Sequence record: MK568540.2
Reading direction: 5' to 3' (one strand)
Length of the DNA stretch: 64,000 bases
A program made the translations under genes and the position numbers. Positions 5,247-33,039 of the stretch are shown piece by piece (position 1 is the stretch's first letter; every line of letters starts with the position of its first letter). The notes under the pieces are model-generated. The model saw nothing but the letters and a program-made list of their open reading frames with translations. It was not told the DNA's origin and did not search any database.

Positions 5247-5666
5247 TTATAGACGATTTACTAGTCTAGTTGACAAGGCAAACAATCTATCGAAGTTAGT
5301 TTTTAAGTGATACTGTATAGACACGTCATACGTGTTTTCATCATATACAGGGATGACATCAATTCGCTGAATAGCAACACGAGGTTCCCATCTTGAAATT
5401 GCGTTTTCAATACTATATTTGATTGAGAACGCGCTTGCTGGAGAAATATTCTCAAACAATTGATTGTTAATGTCACAGCCGAATTCAGGGTTGAACGGTC
5501 GTTCTCCCTTATTCGTACTCACGATACCTACGATAGATTCTTGTATTGCTTTTAAGTCATACGATGCGCTCAAGTCATTGTTTACAACACTTTTATTAAA
5601 GTTTGCAGGGATGTCACTGAAATAGAAACTCCCTGGCTTTAACGTGTTCAACTCTGCAATTGCCAT
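5247..5666 (-). CDS. 25: Baseplate wedge protein gp25
   Basis: 139 aa; KGERPFNPEFGC motif and WEPRV. Confidence 0.92.
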   Translation of the reverse strand: MAIAELNTLKPGSFYFSDIPANFNKSVVNNDLSASYDLKAIQESIVGIVSTNKGERPFNPEFGCDINNQLFENISPASAFSIKYSIENAISRWEPRVAIQRIDVIPVYDENTYDVSIQYHLKTNFDRLFALSTRLVNRL

Positions 5667-5689
5667 AGTTTTTTCTCCGATTTTAAATT

Positions 5690-19367: not shown

Positions 19368-19431
19368 GTATTTCATCGAGTCGAGAGACAGAACACAAAC
19401 TTTCAACTCGATGAAATATTTGAAAAAGTTG

Positions 19432-19459
19432 TTGACTTACACTGAAATGATGTTAAGAT
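19432..19459 (+). promoter_or_regulatory. Early promoter driving the RNA island
   Basis: AAAAAGTTG-TTGACT..TG-T-TAAGAT. Confidence 0.7.
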
Positions 19460-19467
19460 TAACACAG

Positions 19468-19576
19468 TTGATTAAGCGAGCTAAGTTCATCGTTCTCGCC
19501 TCTTATTGAAGATGAACAATATTGATTAAGCAGACTAAACTCATCGTTTCTGCCTCTTCTCTGAAGATGAGTAATA
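19468..19576 (+). repeat. Two tandem 54/55-nt repeats, each an H-type pseudoknot
   Basis: Copy 1: GCGAG/CTCGC plus GTTCATC/GATGAAC. Copy 2: GCAGA/TCTGC plus ACTCATC/GATGAGT. Both stems show compensatory changes. Confidence 0.85.
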
Positions 19577-19721
19577 TTTTAAATGTGCGTTAGCCGCAAT
19601 GAATACATGGAGCCAGTATACGTTCTGGCGTGCAGGGATACTCTTAGCGGACGAATTCTCAATCAAAAACTAGCTGAGTTAAAATTCGCTCAGTCGGCGT
19701 GCAAGTAGCGCACATTTAAAA
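19577..19721 (+). ncRNA. Orphan structured RNA
   Basis: 13-bp terminal stem TTTTAAATGTGCG/CGCACATTTAAAA with inner stems GCCG/CGGC and GCCAG/CTGGC. Confidence 0.55.
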
Positions 19722-20121: not shown

Positions 20122-20243
20122 GCAGGGTTGGTGTAGTGGCTAGCACACGTAGCATAAACGCAAGCTGTTAAGTTTGTATTCTGCAATCAATTTAGCATAT
20201 CATTTCCAAGATCGTGACGCAGGTTCGAATCCTGCACCCTGCT
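20122..20243 (+). ncRNA. tRNA-like RNA E2 with CTGCAA module (loop ATTTCCAA)
   Basis: Cloverleaf with insert after position 28; 17-bp extended acceptor duplex 20112-20252; no encoded CCA. Confidence 0.8.
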
Positions 20244-20260
20244 CAATATGTTTTTACATT

Positions 20261-20373
20261 GGTGAAGTTAGTTCAGTAGGTTAGAACGCCGGCCAAAAAA
20301 CGAAGTCTGATAAGATTTCATTCTGCATTCACATGCACGCCGGAGGTCGCAGGTTCGAGTCCTGCACTTCACC
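20261..20373 (+). ncRNA. tRNA-like RNA E3 with CTGCAT module in the anticodon loop
   Basis: GGTGAAGT/ACTTCACC acceptor, CCGGC/GCCGG anticodon stem, canonical T-arm. Confidence 0.8.
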
Positions 20374-20383
20374 TTCAAATTCT

Positions 20384-20508
20384 GGAGAGTTAGCTCAGTC
20401 TGGTAGAGCAAAAGAATGTTAAAGAATACTGACAAGCATTCATGCTGCAAACCTTAATAACTAGGTAAATCTTTTTGTCACGTGGTTCAAATCCCGTACT
20501 CTCCACCA
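20384..20508 (+). ncRNA. tRNA-like RNA E4 with CTGCAA module in the anticodon loop
   Basis: GGAGAGT/ACTCTCC-A-CCA, GCTC/GAGC D-stem, AAAGA/TCTTT anticodon stem. Confidence 0.8.
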
Positions 20509-22064: not shown

Positions 22065-22180
22065 AGTCGGGTAGCTCAGTGGTAGAGCACGAAGAATGAT
22101 ACTGACAAGTATCGCTCCAGCACTCCTTCAATTGCCTGTTAAGCACGTGGTCGCTGGTTCGAATCCAGCCCCGACTACCA
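22065..22180 (+). ncRNA. tRNA-Asn(GTT)-like RNA E5 with a 41-nt CAGCAC module inserted between positions 28 and 29
   Basis: Removing the insert restores CGTGC-CTGTTAA-GCACG; acceptor AGTCGGG/CCCGACT-A-CCA. Confidence 0.85.
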
Positions 22181-24842: not shown

Positions 24843-24901
24843 AGTAATCTTACAGCAAACAATACAAAACTTTTATTTGGAAAAAGCAAAAAGGATTACT
24901 G
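24843..24901 (+). ncRNA. Minimal CAGCAA-motif RNA carrying an anticodon-like stem-loop
   Basis: GTAATC-TTA-CAGCAA ... CTTTT-ATTTGGA-AAAAG ... GATTAC-TG. Confidence 0.8.
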
Positions 24902-24912
24902 TTTAAATTCAA

Positions 24913-25310: not shown

Positions 25311-25424
25311 GAGTGTTTTCAGCAAACAATTTACTAATATTCTTATCGGAAAGAAATGTTTAGGGTTCGATTCCCTTTCAGTGTTGGTATCACTGGTCTG
25401 GACGACGCTAGTAATAACACTCAG
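25311..25424 (+). ncRNA. Circularly permuted tRNA-like RNA closed by the CAGCAA motif (YrlA-like topology)
   Basis: Order: GAGTGT-TTT-CAGCAA, anticodon-like hairpin, T-arm AGGG-TTCGATT-CCCT, closed acceptor CAGTG/CACTG, D-like hairpin, ACACTC-AG. Confidence 0.8.
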
Positions 25425-25428
25425 TAAC

Positions 25429-26033: not shown

Positions 26034-26262
26034 AGACAATATACAGCAAACAATTGAAATTACTTAAAAGAAGTGATGATCTTAACCTGGGCTGATTTTA
26101 ACCTGAGCTTGCTTAGGCGCAGCTTGAAAGGAAAGATTCTCTCTGTCTAGAAATAGTCAGATAGGCGCGTCGCTGAAACAGACGATATTTGCTTGTTGAG
26201 AATCAATAAGCTAGTCAACTCCGATTTATGCAAAAGACGAAAAAACACTTCGGTATTGTCTG
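26034..26262 (+). ncRNA. Large CAGCAA-motif RNA L1
   Basis: GACAAT-ATA-CAGCAA ... ATTGTC-TG; several hairpins; 3' block shared with L2. Confidence 0.8.
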
Positions 26263-26266
26263 TACT

Positions 26267-27999: not shown

Positions 28000-28260
28000 G
28001 CAATAAGACATTGTACAGCAATCATTACAAAATCAAAGCAAACTTTAATAGTAATGAGGCGCACTAGCTGCTTTCTCAGTGATGACGTGAGCCTGTCGCA
28101 TTCTCATGGTAGGAAATGACCATTAAGACGGTGTTCGTACTGTCAAACGAAATAGGACTCATGCCGAATCATGAGTATTTTTCCGATGAGAAACATCGTT
28201 ATAGTCAATTGAGATTTAAGGAAAGACGATAAAACATTTCTCGAATGTCTGTGTATTGCA
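28000..28260 (+). ncRNA. Large CAGCAA-motif RNA L2
   Basis: GACATT-GTA-CAGCAA ... AATGTC-TG, outer GCAATA/TATTGC stem, many hairpins, 3' block shared with L1. Confidence 0.8.
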
Positions 28261-28266
28261 CATTAG

Positions 28267-28290
28267 AACCTGCCTTGAGCAGGTTTTTTT
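28267..28290 (+). terminator. Terminator ending the RNA island
   Basis: AACCTGC-CTTGA-GCAGGTT followed by a T-run. Confidence 0.85.
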
Positions 28291-30951: not shown

Positions 30952-30980
30952 GTTTACATGCATTAAAATTCGCGTATAAT
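30952..30980 (+). promoter_or_regulatory. T4-type early promoter of the DUF2828 gene
   Basis: AAAAAAGT-GTTTAC-N17-TATAAT. Confidence 0.8.
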
Positions 30981-30992
30981 CACTTCATCAAA

Positions 30993-31035
30993 GACATTTT
31001 ACAGCAATTAATTATGAGGAAATGAACAATGTCAG
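30993..31035 (+). promoter_or_regulatory. CAGCAA motif enclosing the SD and pairing with the start codon of the DUF2828 gene
   Basis: GACATT-TTA-CAGCAA-...GAGG...-AATGTC-AG; the ATG at 31029 lies in the 3' strand. Confidence 0.85.
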
Positions 31036-32465
31036 TATTTATGAACGCAATGCAAACAAACGATTCACGCACAGCAAACGGTGCAGTTACTCACAGCACT
31101 TCAGGTAACGAGTGTCTAAACTTGTTCTTCGGTATTGCTGCTATGCGTGGCAACGATCAGTCTAAAACACTGTTCGGTCGTGCGTTTGCAGAAAACCCAG
31201 AACTAGCGACTCGCATTCTTTTGTGGTCTCGTGATGTTCGAGGTGGTGCGGGTGAACGTGGTACTTTCCGTACTCTATTCACTAAACTTTGTAATGAACA
31301 GCCTGACGTAGCTCGTGCTGTAATGTCGAAAATTCCAGAACTAGGTCGTTACGATGACTTGATTTCTGCTTTCGGTACACGTCTTGAAAAAGATGCGATT
31401 ACAATGTGGTCGAACGCAATTGTCAATGACAAGAATGGTCTTGCTGCGAAGTGGTTCCCACGTGAAAACAGCAAAAACGGTCATGTGTTCAAGCGCACAA
31501 TCAAGTCTCTTGGCGTAACTGCGAAGCAGTGGCGTAAGATTCTGTCGCTTCTGTCTGACACTGTTGAGCAGAAGATGTGTGCGCAAAAATGGGATGCAAT
31601 CGACTTCGGTAAGTTGCCTTCTGTAGCGTCTGCTCGTTATCAACAAGCATTCGGTCGTAACGCTTCAACACGTTACACAAACTACATCGAGTCACTTCAA
31701 AAAGGTGAAGCGAAGATCAACGCTGGCGCATTGTTCCCATACGATGTCGTTAAGAGCGTTAGTCACGGTAATGCGTCTGTAGCGAACGAGCAATGGAAAG
31801 CTCTGCCAAACTACATGGAAGGTTCTGATGAACGCATCATCCCTGTTGTTGACGTGTCTGGCTCTATGAGCACGCCAATTAACGCAGGTACAGACCGTTC
31901 AGGTGTGACTTGTAAGCAAGTTGCAATGTCTCTTGGGATTTATGTTGCTGAACGCAATGAAGGCATCTTCAAAGATCAGTTCATTTCGTTCTCAAGCGAC
32001 CCGCACTTCCACCAGTTGCGCGGCTCTTCATTGAAAGAGCGTCTTGATAACATGAATCGTTCAGGCGAAGACATGAGTACGAACATCGGTAAGTGCTTTG
32101 ATGTTCTGCTAGAGCGTGCGAAGCGTGCAAATCTTTCACAAGAAGATATGCCAACCAAGTTGCTTATCATGAGTGACATGGAATTCGATCAAGCAAACAC
32201 TGGTGGTGGTTGGTACGGTCGCGGTGAACCTGCGAACTTCGATGCAATCAAAGCCAAGTACGCACGTGCTGGTTATGAAATGCCACAACTGGTCTTCTGG
32301 AACATTCGTGGTCGTCTTGGCAACGTTCCGGTTAAAGCTGGTGAAGCGGGTACTGCACTGGTATCTGGTTGTAGCCCATCTATCTTGACTTCACTGTTGG
32401 GTGGTGAGCTTGAGCCAATCAAGATCATGATGAAAACTGTAGGCGTCGAACGCTACAGCTTTTAA
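31029..32465 (+). CDS. DUF2828-type TROVE/Ro60-like protein with C-terminal vWA domain
   Basis: T.NGA..HSTSG..CL.LF, RDVRGGAGER, IPELGRYDDL, AKWFPR; vWA MIDAS DVSGSM, ST, LIMSDMEFD, VFWN. Confidence 0.8.
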   Translation: MSVFMNAMQTNDSRTANGAVTHSTSGNECLNLFFGIAAMRGNDQSKTLFGRAFAENPELATRILLWSRDVRGGAGERGTFRTLFTKLCNEQPDVARAVMSKIPELGRYDDLISAFGTRLEKDAITMWSNAIVNDKNGLAAKWFPRENSKNGHVFKRTIKSLGVTAKQWRKILSLLSDTVEQKMCAQKWDAIDFGKLPSVASARYQQAFGRNASTRYTNYIESLQKGEAKINAGALFPYDVVKSVSHGNASVANEQWKALPNYMEGSDERIIPVVDVSGSMSTPINAGTDRSGVTCKQVAMSLGIYVAERNEGIFKDQFISFSSDPHFHQLRGSSLKERLDNMNRSGEDMSTNIGKCFDVLLERAKRANLSQEDMPTKLLIMSDMEFDQANTGGGWYGRGEPANFDAIKAKYARAGYEMPQLVFWNIRGRLGNVPVKAGEAGTALVSGCSPSILTSLLGGELEPIKIMMKTVGVERYSF

Positions 32466-32474
32466 ATAAGTGAT

Positions 32475-32501
32475 AAGGGCGGCATTGTGCTGCCCTTTTT
32501 T
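32475..32501 (+). terminator. Terminator after the DUF2828 gene
   Basis: AAGGGCGGCA/TGCTGCCCTT followed by a T-run. Confidence 0.75.
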
Positions 32502-32514
32502 GTAAGAGGTGAAA

Positions 32515-33039
32515 ATGTTCGATTGGGAAGCGATAGAAACAGCTATCAATAACAGTCATCCAAATAGCACAATATACGTTGGGTGTGATAGTAAGCGTAA
32601 AAGTGACATGATTAGTTACGCGACTGTGATCATAATTCATCTTGAAGGTAGTAAAGGTGCTCAAGTGTTTAAAGCAGTTGAGACTGAACCTGCATACTTA
32701 TCATGTAAAGATGGTATCAGAAGTCGATTGATGAATGAAGTATACAAAGCGGGTGAAACTGCACTAATGGTTAAGCCAATGTGCGGTACTAGAGGCTTTG
32801 AAGTTCACGTTGACATCAACCCTGACCCCACACACAAATCTCACGTTGCTTATAACGAAGCTAAAGGCACGATCTTGGGATATGTTGGTCAAGAGCCCGT
32901 GTTCAAACCTGATGCGTTTGCTGCGTCTTGTGCTGCTGATTATGACGCAGTTCGAAGAGCAGATAAAATCGCTAAACGAAAAGAACTTAGACGGGCTAAA
33001 CGAAAAGCAAAGAAACAAAAAACAAAAGGGCGCAAATAG
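32515..33039 (+). CDS. RNase H-like YkuK (DUF458)-family protein
   Basis: IYVGCDS, RLMNEV, EVHVDINPD..HKS, KPDAFAAS.AAD. Confidence 0.8.
   Translation: MFDWEAIETAINNSHPNSTIYVGCDSKRKSDMISYATVIIIHLEGSKGAQVFKAVETEPAYLSCKDGIRSRLMNEVYKAGETALMVKPMCGTRGFEVHVDINPDPTHKSHVAYNEAKGTILGYVGQEPVFKPDAFAASCAADYDAVRRADKIAKRKELRRAKRKAKKQKTKGRK

Follow-up and report, generated by a model that had tools for sequence, protein, structure and literature searches.

Does a phage protein of the DUF2828 family control its own synthesis through a small RNA element wrapped around its start codon? The question is raised by a 64,000-nucleotide (nt) stretch of the genome of Vibrio phage Va3 (MK568540.2; hereafter the window), a KVP40-like T4-type phage with a large transfer RNA (tRNA) island; 28 tRNA genes lie in the window. 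The gene in question encodes 478 amino acids in which Pfam recognizes DUF7788, a vWA domain (E = 1.7e-46), and DUF2828 (E = 2.3e-29). The protein falls into PHROG family 850, 'RNA-binding protein', and its orthologues in phages KVP40 and nt-1 bear the same name in RefSeq. A preliminary description, made from the DNA letters alone, had proposed that a motif shared with RNAs of the tRNA island sequesters the start codon of this gene and that the encoded protein is the motif's ligand. Our analysis of sequences and predicted structures leans towards such a feedback and places the leader in an RNA family that accompanies DUF2828 genes in many phages.

The leader element of Va3 is 44 nt long (30993-31036) and reads GACAUU-UUA-CAGCAA-(20-nt loop)-AAUGUC-AGU, its 5' strand beginning with the invariant G of the family described below. 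It overlaps the ribosome-binding site, with the Shine-Dalgarno sequence GAGG in the loop and the AUG (31029-31031) inside the 3' strand, so that the first codons, Met-Ser-Val, provide both the partner strand and the terminal AGU. Upstream stands a T4-type early, sigma-70-like promoter that scored 11 of 12 in a consensus scan and is kept in phages VH7D, KVP40, nt-1 and 1.081.O; from its position, transcription is expected to start near 30987, about 6 nt 5' of the motif's G. Letters and coordinates of promoter, stem strands, core, Shine-Dalgarno loop and ATG agreed throughout with those first described, and are collected in Table 1. As a separate observation, the promoter spacer of KVP40 (locus L001, ~962-979) and nt-1 (L002, ~920-936) consists of an inverted repeat, CACGGGTTCAAATCCGTG, which Va3 and VH7D do not have.

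That the leader is a real member of an RNA family was established in two ways. A strict grammar (stem, (N)T(A/T)CAGCAA, partner strand, (A/T)GT) found five copies in the window, all on the plus strand and starting at 24844, 25311, 26035, 28007 and 30993, against a mean of 0.04 in dinucleotide shuffles. The bare GACATT...AATGTC inverted repeat on its own is not significant, since it was matched in 26 of 100 shuffles. Subsequently, we built a covariance model, R1, from 43 short grammar-fitting RNAs on contigs whose DUF2828 proteins are ~46-54% identical to that of Va3; neither a leader nor any KVP40-like sequence was in the training set. Run over both strands of the window, R1 ranked the leader second, with a full-length alignment at 23.3 bits (E = 4.8e-4), behind the free RNA at 24844-24902 (42.2 bits, E = 2e-9); these E-values are rough owing to a shortened calibration. 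The leader is thus a genuine instance of the family and, as had been claimed, the only copy outside the RNA island: by grammar and covariance model alike, all others lie at 24.8-28.3 kb.

The family has a simple consensus, G-(G/A)-(A/U)-U-N-N followed by N-U-(A/U)-CAGCAA, an A/U-rich variable stretch, and a partner strand ending in C and followed by (U/A)-G-N. Within CAGCAA, the C, G, C and A are the same in all 93 matches, and the U two bases 5' of the core is present in 90; the position after the C of the 3' strand is U in 71 and A in 16 of the 93, and the next is G in 92. In an alignment (A5) that was fitted to the model and is hence biased towards its structure, the outer G1-C pair is invariant (92 of 92 sequences), 99.3% of stem positions are paired and each of the other five of the six pairs is changed on both sides. 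The covariation score of the stem was 0.873 versus 0.186 in shuffles, and pairing collapsed when the partner columns were slid. A MAFFT alignment of the leader hairpins (A4), in which the 3' strands were split, was dropped from the pair counts.

Furthermore, in phages of very different kinds the RNA family goes closely together with DUF2828/DUF7788 genes. In 89 loci, scanned on both strands over 1.19 Mb, all 93 R1 matches (E ≤ 0.01) had the same orientation as the DUF2828 gene; with a simpler descriptor, the count in DUF2828 loci was 119 on the gene's strand versus 6 on the opposite one, and 24 contigs binned into bacterial and archaeal genomes yielded 15 matches, all of them on the gene's strand. 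Same-strand RNAs adjoin DUF2828 genes in marine and freshwater phage contigs, metagenome-assembled contigs and named phages (Table 1). The free RNAs are mostly 47-67 nt long, and the largest clade has one RNA of ~57 nt placed 8-21 nt 3' of the stop codon. In some members the G-stem/CAGCAA base bears a tRNA-like module in permuted order, made up of T arm, closed acceptor stem and D arm. At Rfam gathering thresholds, the window and 14 loci gave only tRNA, transfer-messenger RNA (tmRNA) and group I intron, and Rfam yielded no meaningful match to the leader alone; literature searches turned up no account of these RNAs, or of the leader element, in phages.

The preliminary description had counted a lack of such leaders on orthologues among the findings that would speak against it; a comparison of orthologues revealed instead the same leader well beyond Va3. 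VH7D, KVP40, nt-1 and 1.081.O, the last with a protein 75.5% identical to that of Va3 (tblastn), have the same arrangement around the start codon. Across the five KVP40-group phages GACATT, ACAGCAA and AATGTCAG are invariant, and two spacer bases and the loop vary. These data bear on the idea that the leader is a functionless remnant, such as a collapsed duplicate of the RNA at 28007-28252, whose letters are kept by the constraint of promoter, ribosome-binding site and first codons. The stems of the two are indeed identical (GACAUU/AAUGUC), the 3' strand is under coding constraint, and three natural variants, discussed below, have lost the stem. Nevertheless, the non-coding 5' strand and ACAGCAA stayed invariant down to 75% protein identity while the loop drifted, and equivalent leaders with different stems occur in unrelated lineages, far above chance placement; of the explanations weighed here we give this one the least credence.

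Those equivalent leaders came from a descriptor scan in which a motif RNA ends just 5' of the gene in 34 of 157 loci, representing ~24 distinct sequences. In several lineages with 40-51% identity they lie at the ribosome-binding site or adjoin it, and their stems differ and compensate (GACAUU/AAUGUC, GAUUAA/UUAAUC, GAAUUA/UAAUUC, GAUUUA/UAAAUC, GAAUCG/CGAUUC, GGUUG/CAACC and others). In the distant leaders the 3' C(U/A)G mostly lies 14-17 nt 5' of the AUG, abutting the Shine-Dalgarno sequence. Among the R1 matches, 12 of 93 end within 48 nt of a start codon, where uniform placement would give 0.41. In four lineages (L042/L090, L053/L085, L096 and L091) a sigma-70-like promoter stands at the distance from the motif seen in Va3, ending 12-19 nt 5' of its G, and the mRNA therefore has the motif at its 5' end.

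Size and surroundings bear on a second alternative, in which the leader is a cis-encoded partner RNA or processing element and not a repressor site, co-transcribed with the gene so that the protein is loaded in cis or a mini-RNA is excised; effects on translation would then be incidental or come from mRNA cleavage. Many lineages have full-size RNAs, some of them tRNA-like, directly upstream of the gene or 8-21 nt downstream on the same strand, so tight packing and co-transcription are the general rule, and bacterial Y RNAs likewise adjoin Ro60 genes (PMC4201824). On the other hand, the leader copies are the bare module and shorter than the free members: seven of them measure 33-44 nt, leaders being shorter than the other matches with their median of 58 nt (Mann-Whitney p = 3.5e-4), and leaders make up seven of the eight shortest R1 matches. 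Loci with such mini-leaders also encode full-size family RNAs elsewhere in the same genomes, and release of a 3' end would, in the KVP40 group, cut the mRNA within codon 3. We therefore consider a cis partner unlikely, though a serious contender.

The second part of the initial proposal, that the DUF2828 protein is the ligand, has been much strengthened by the same-strand linkage of RNA and gene and by the predicted fold of the protein. An AlphaFold model of moderate confidence (predicted local distance difference test, pLDDT, 70.6; predicted template modelling score, pTM, 0.64) found as its best fold match in the PDB the Ro60 protein of Thermus phage phiLo (9l5y; E = 1.4e-7, TM-score 0.57-0.59), all other matches being to vWA domains only. 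Thus the DUF2828 protein is Ro60-like by predicted fold. Residues D275-x-S277-x-S279 are invariant, a D-x-S-x-S pattern (275-279) that we take to be the metal-ion-dependent adhesion site (MIDAS) of vWA domains. At the sequence level the likeness was not seen: Pfam gave only DUF7788 and DUF2828 at E ≤ 10, with no match to TROVE, and a profile search of PDB sequences returned designed armadillo repeats and no Ro60. With tblastn, homologues were found in 711 phage records, among them Felix O1-like, KVP40-like and Listeria A511-like phages, Campylobacter, Staphylococcus and Enterococcus phages and mycobacteriophages; their annotations go no further than 'RNA-binding', 'Ro-like' or 'hypothetical'. 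In a protein search for relatives, all were phage-like among the matches listed. Inside the gene, the stretch CACAGCAAACGG (31066-31080) specifies T-x-N-G, an invariant N-terminal motif of the protein; its likeness to the RNA core, with no flanking stem, is probably a coincidence.

The motif could instead be read by another factor, a ribonuclease of host or phage or a different RNA-binding protein, and would then be a shared processing or decay signal for which DUF2828 is not the ligand. The invariant 5' G and 3' C(U/A)G do resemble defined RNA ends, and the only direct binder shown for the similar Class I RNAs of Dictyostelium is the RRM protein Rnp1A (PMC7919456). Against this, the motif accompanies DUF2828 in phages of Proteobacteria, Firmicutes, Actinobacteria and Campylobacter and invariably shares the gene's strand, no other shared neighbour gene was seen in these loci, and the DUF2828 protein itself has a Ro60-like predicted fold. 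The one candidate neighbour, an RNase H-like gene (PF04308, YkuK-type; 32509-33039) that comes after the DUF2828 gene in every Vibrio phage examined, was rejected as a conserved partner: it was found in only two loci outside that group, is essentially confined to Vibrio phages and is therefore no general partner. Involvement of another factor thus appears improbable to us.

The best explanation of the 5' untranslated region of the DUF2828 mRNA is a miniature cis copy of the module of this Y-RNA-like family, consisting of the 5' G, the 6-base-pair (bp) stem, the single-stranded UUACAGCAA and the 3' C-(U/A)G. Since the leader carries such a copy, the DUF2828 protein probably, if by no means certainly, limits its own synthesis through it. 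Protein in excess of its free RNA partners would bind its own leader and clamp the marginal stem, of which the start codon forms the 3' strand and whose loop holds the Shine-Dalgarno sequence; the clamped stem would then block binding of the 30S subunit. Abundant free RNAs of the tRNA island would compete for the protein and relieve repression, so that protein output would follow the RNA pool, as in the feedback of ribosomal proteins, thrS and T4 gp32.

Autogenous control through RNA mimicry is well known from the E. coli ribosomal proteins L1, S8 and S15, the thrS operator and T4 gp32, gp43 and RegA, and further from the operator at which the MS2 coat protein controls replicase and from U1A acting on its own pre-mRNA. 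Such mRNAs hold a small copy of the protein's target at or beside the ribosome-binding site, and with it the primary target competes, coupling the protein to the level of the RNA. The Va3 leader resembles these operators in that the copy on the gene's own mRNA is recognizably of the RNA family, as its R1 score attests, and sits at the ribosome-binding site. The start codon is enclosed in the hairpin, which recalls the MS2 operator, and as in thrS the mimic of the distant DUF2828 orthologues abuts the Shine-Dalgarno sequence. One difference is that the protein presumed to act on the Va3 leader is Ro60-like.

Several observations weigh against a repressor site. Folded alone, the 44-nt element forms the stem with pair probabilities of 0.8-0.99; the stem is weak, however, with a stem-only energy of -2.9 kcal/mol, and it is missing from the minimum-energy fold of the 76-nt context, whose stability relative to shuffles is unremarkable (z = +0.68). 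The start codon could therefore be sequestered only if a protein clamps the stem. In addition, only about one fifth of the orthologous loci have a leader copy, the RNA lying after the stop codon or elsewhere in the others, and several of the upstream RNAs of other lineages are full-size and tRNA-like (103-124 nt), perhaps no more than partner genes transcribed along with the DUF2828 gene. In the KVP40 group the unchanging stem offers no covariation, because its 3' strand is also Met-Ser coding sequence. Moreover, the Rfam Class I model discussed below had no match to the leader at E ≤ 10.

Further counter-evidence comes from the three natural variants. In phages D480, VH1_2019 and CZ01 only UUACAGCA is kept, directly 5' of the AUG, and there is no stem: the leader reads GGAGC-UUACAGCA-AUG in RNA (GGAGC-TTACAGCA-ATG in DNA), and a search for a stem partner in these leaders found none. 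The hairpin is therefore dispensable, and the core is what is retained. The three phages share, besides the replaced leader, a changed N-terminus (MTS...) and a homing endonuclease gene upstream of the DUF2828 gene (Table 1). Over their first 14 bases, the VH1_2019 and CZ01 reading frames match the one at the distant locus L042, a hint that flanking DNA was co-converted during homing.

The fold match invites comparison with Ro60 and its Y RNAs. The predicted fold of DUF2828 may share with that of phiLo Ro60 (PDB 9L5Y/9KOP) a helical-repeat ring joined to a vWA domain, and in both systems the RNAs are same-strand gene neighbours closed by a terminal stem between their 5' and 3' ends. Some DUF2828-linked RNAs may also share with YrlA the permuted tRNA-like module; the Rfam YrlA model matched members from L060, L038 and phage Snenia at 34.8-39.3 bits, below its gathering score of 69. 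The proteins differ, in contrast, in that DUF2828 has no Pfam TROVE domain and no sequence match to solved Ro60. To our knowledge, no autoregulation is known for Ro60-type proteins. Y-like RNAs adjoining phage Ro60 genes have already been reported (PMC4201824, PMC12135203), phiLo Ro60 binding those encoded beside its gene via a CGAA-containing bulged helix (PMC12135203), and these papers describe no Ro60 autoregulation (PMC4201824, PMC12135203). Whereas Y RNAs present a bulged helix with GNCGAAN0-1G or CGAA (PMC4201824, PMC12135203), the DUF2828 RNAs have a single-stranded UUACAGCAA beside a short stem; the bulged-helix motif was not seen, and the conserved element is instead NU(A/U)CAGCAA beside the 6-bp stem. 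We read the DUF2828-RNA system as a divergent parallel of Ro60-Y RNA that lies outside that family.

A second resemblance leads to the Class I RNAs of dictyostelids. Three independent phage RNAs scored 31.8-32.4 bits with the Rfam model RF01414 (Dicty_Class_I_RNA), aligned over the whole length of the model but short of its gathering score, 41.5; at that threshold there was no RF01414 match in 135 kb (14 loci). Class I RNAs are 42-65 nt long, with a variable 6-bp terminal stem, an invariant G at the 5' end that pairs with the C of CUGU at the 3' end, a core containing UUACAGCAA beside the 5' strand and an A/U-rich, variable remainder (PMC7919456). The phage RNAs share the size (~50-60 nt), the compensating 6-bp stem, the 5' G-C pair, the 3' CUG and the core UUACAGCAA, and the leader, at 44 nt, ends in CAGU. 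Of the 11-nt Class I motif CCUUACAGCAA, CAGCAA and the preceding U(A/U) match and the first spacer positions vary, and the phage RNAs usually have a 3-nt spacer from stem to CAGCAA, one base less than the 4 nt of the Rfam consensus. The two groups differ in origin and promoters, Class I RNAs being dictyostelid with an upstream DUSE promoter, whereas the phage promoters are of bacterial or T4-early type.

Class I RNAs, whose known binder is an RRM protein (PMC7919456), have been reported to be unique to dictyostelids and linked to multicellular development. A tentative and rather doubtful reading is that DUF2828/DUF7788 proteins together with stem-UUACAGCAA RNAs make up an ancient ribonucleoprotein (RNP), a parallel of Ro60-Y RNA whose range goes beyond phages; the Class I RNAs would be its eukaryotic members, either homologous or shaped by binding a homologous protein. 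The DUF2828 family is reported in plants (literature found under the family identifiers consists of plant papers only) and in mimivirus-like sequences (bioRxiv 10.1101/033464), which makes transfer conceivable and proves nothing.

With a searchable RNA partner and a cis copy on its own ribosome-binding site, the DUF2828 family becomes a testable RNP with a putative built-in feedback, and the leader copies give an exact minimal site of 33-44 nt for biochemistry and structural work. The motif RNAs also help to explain gaps left without annotation in phage tRNA islands. If the feedback is real, the phage leader would be the first case of a DUF2828 family member regulating its own mRNA. Should the likeness to Class I RNAs be more than coincidence, it would offer a candidate protein partner for an RNA class without an assigned function more than 20 years after its description in 2004, and were the ancient RNP real, a DUF2828-type protein would be predicted as the missing Class I partner.

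Table 1. Coordinates of the leader, the DUF2828 gene, family RNAs and neighbouring features. Positions refer to the window unless a locus (L) or phage is named.
Feature	Position	Strand	Remarks
5' stem strand GACAUU	30993-30998	+	begins with the family's invariant G
Single-stranded core UUA-CAGCAA	30999-31007	+	spacer UUA 30999-31001; CAGCAA 31002-31007
Variable 20-nt loop	31008-31027	+	Shine-Dalgarno GAGG 31016-31019, 9 nt 5' of AUG
3' strand AAUGUC and terminal AGU	31028-31036	+	strand 31028-31033; AG 31034-31035; family (U/A)G-N
Promoter, T4-type early / sigma-70-like	30952-30980	+	-35 GTTTAC 30952-30957; 17-nt spacer; -10 TATAAT 30975-30980
DUF2828 + DUF7788 (vWA) gene	31029-32465	+	478-amino-acid open reading frame, Pfam; presumed motif ligand
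Terminator-like hairpin, then T-run	32475-32497	+	directly 3' of DUF2828 gene
Free 59-nt RNA, GUAAUC-UUA-CAGCAA...GAUUAC-UGU	24844-24902	+	between tRNA-Trp and tRNA-Asn; putative decoy of the preliminary description
Longer member, GAGUGU-UUU-CAGCAA...ACACUC-AGU	25311-25425	+	T-arm-like GGGUUCGAUUCCC inside; R1 finds core only
Long member, GACAAU-AUA-CAGCAA...AUUGUC-UGU	26035-26263	+	grammar scan, R1
Long member, GACAUU/AAUGUC stem	28007-28252	+	followed by terminator-like hairpin, ~28262-28290 (by eye)
RF01414 matches	24844-24902 (31.8 bits); L139 4556-4613; L092 4377-4429		other two 32.4 and 31.9 bits
Permuted tRNA-like members	L060 9798-9926; L036 3263-3392; L168 ~5549-5680; leaders of L064, L073, L092, L094, L138		
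Family RNA, Felixounavirus skuden			within tRNA array
Family RNA, Listeria phage A511			directly upstream of gp57
Family RNA, mycobacteriophage Snenia (cluster-E-type)			downstream of 'Ro-like RNA binding protein'
Family RNA, Campylobacter phage F355			leader of DUF2828 gene
Homing endonuclease gene upstream of DUF2828 gene	L003 255-857; L004 275-868; L164 868-1458	minus	VH1_2019, CZ01, D480; GIY-YIG in CZ01 annotation

The tRNA islands hold further RNAs of note. Four tRNA-like RNAs of the window (20130-20245, 20262-20373, 20384-20505 and 22065-22177) have normal acceptor, D and T arms, and ~40 extra bases replace the anticodon arm; the Rfam tRNA model matches three of them, at 112-122 nt. Their inserts contain the CAGCAA-like strings UUCUGCAAUCA, GCUGCAAAC and CCAGCAC, and they may represent a second, non-permuted class of partner RNA. 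In unrelated contigs, phage-encoded tmRNA genes above the Rfam gathering score (L068 16534-16891, L038 8605-9054) and large tRNA arrays lie a few kb from the DUF2828 gene, and L033 carries a group I intron at 19404-19595.

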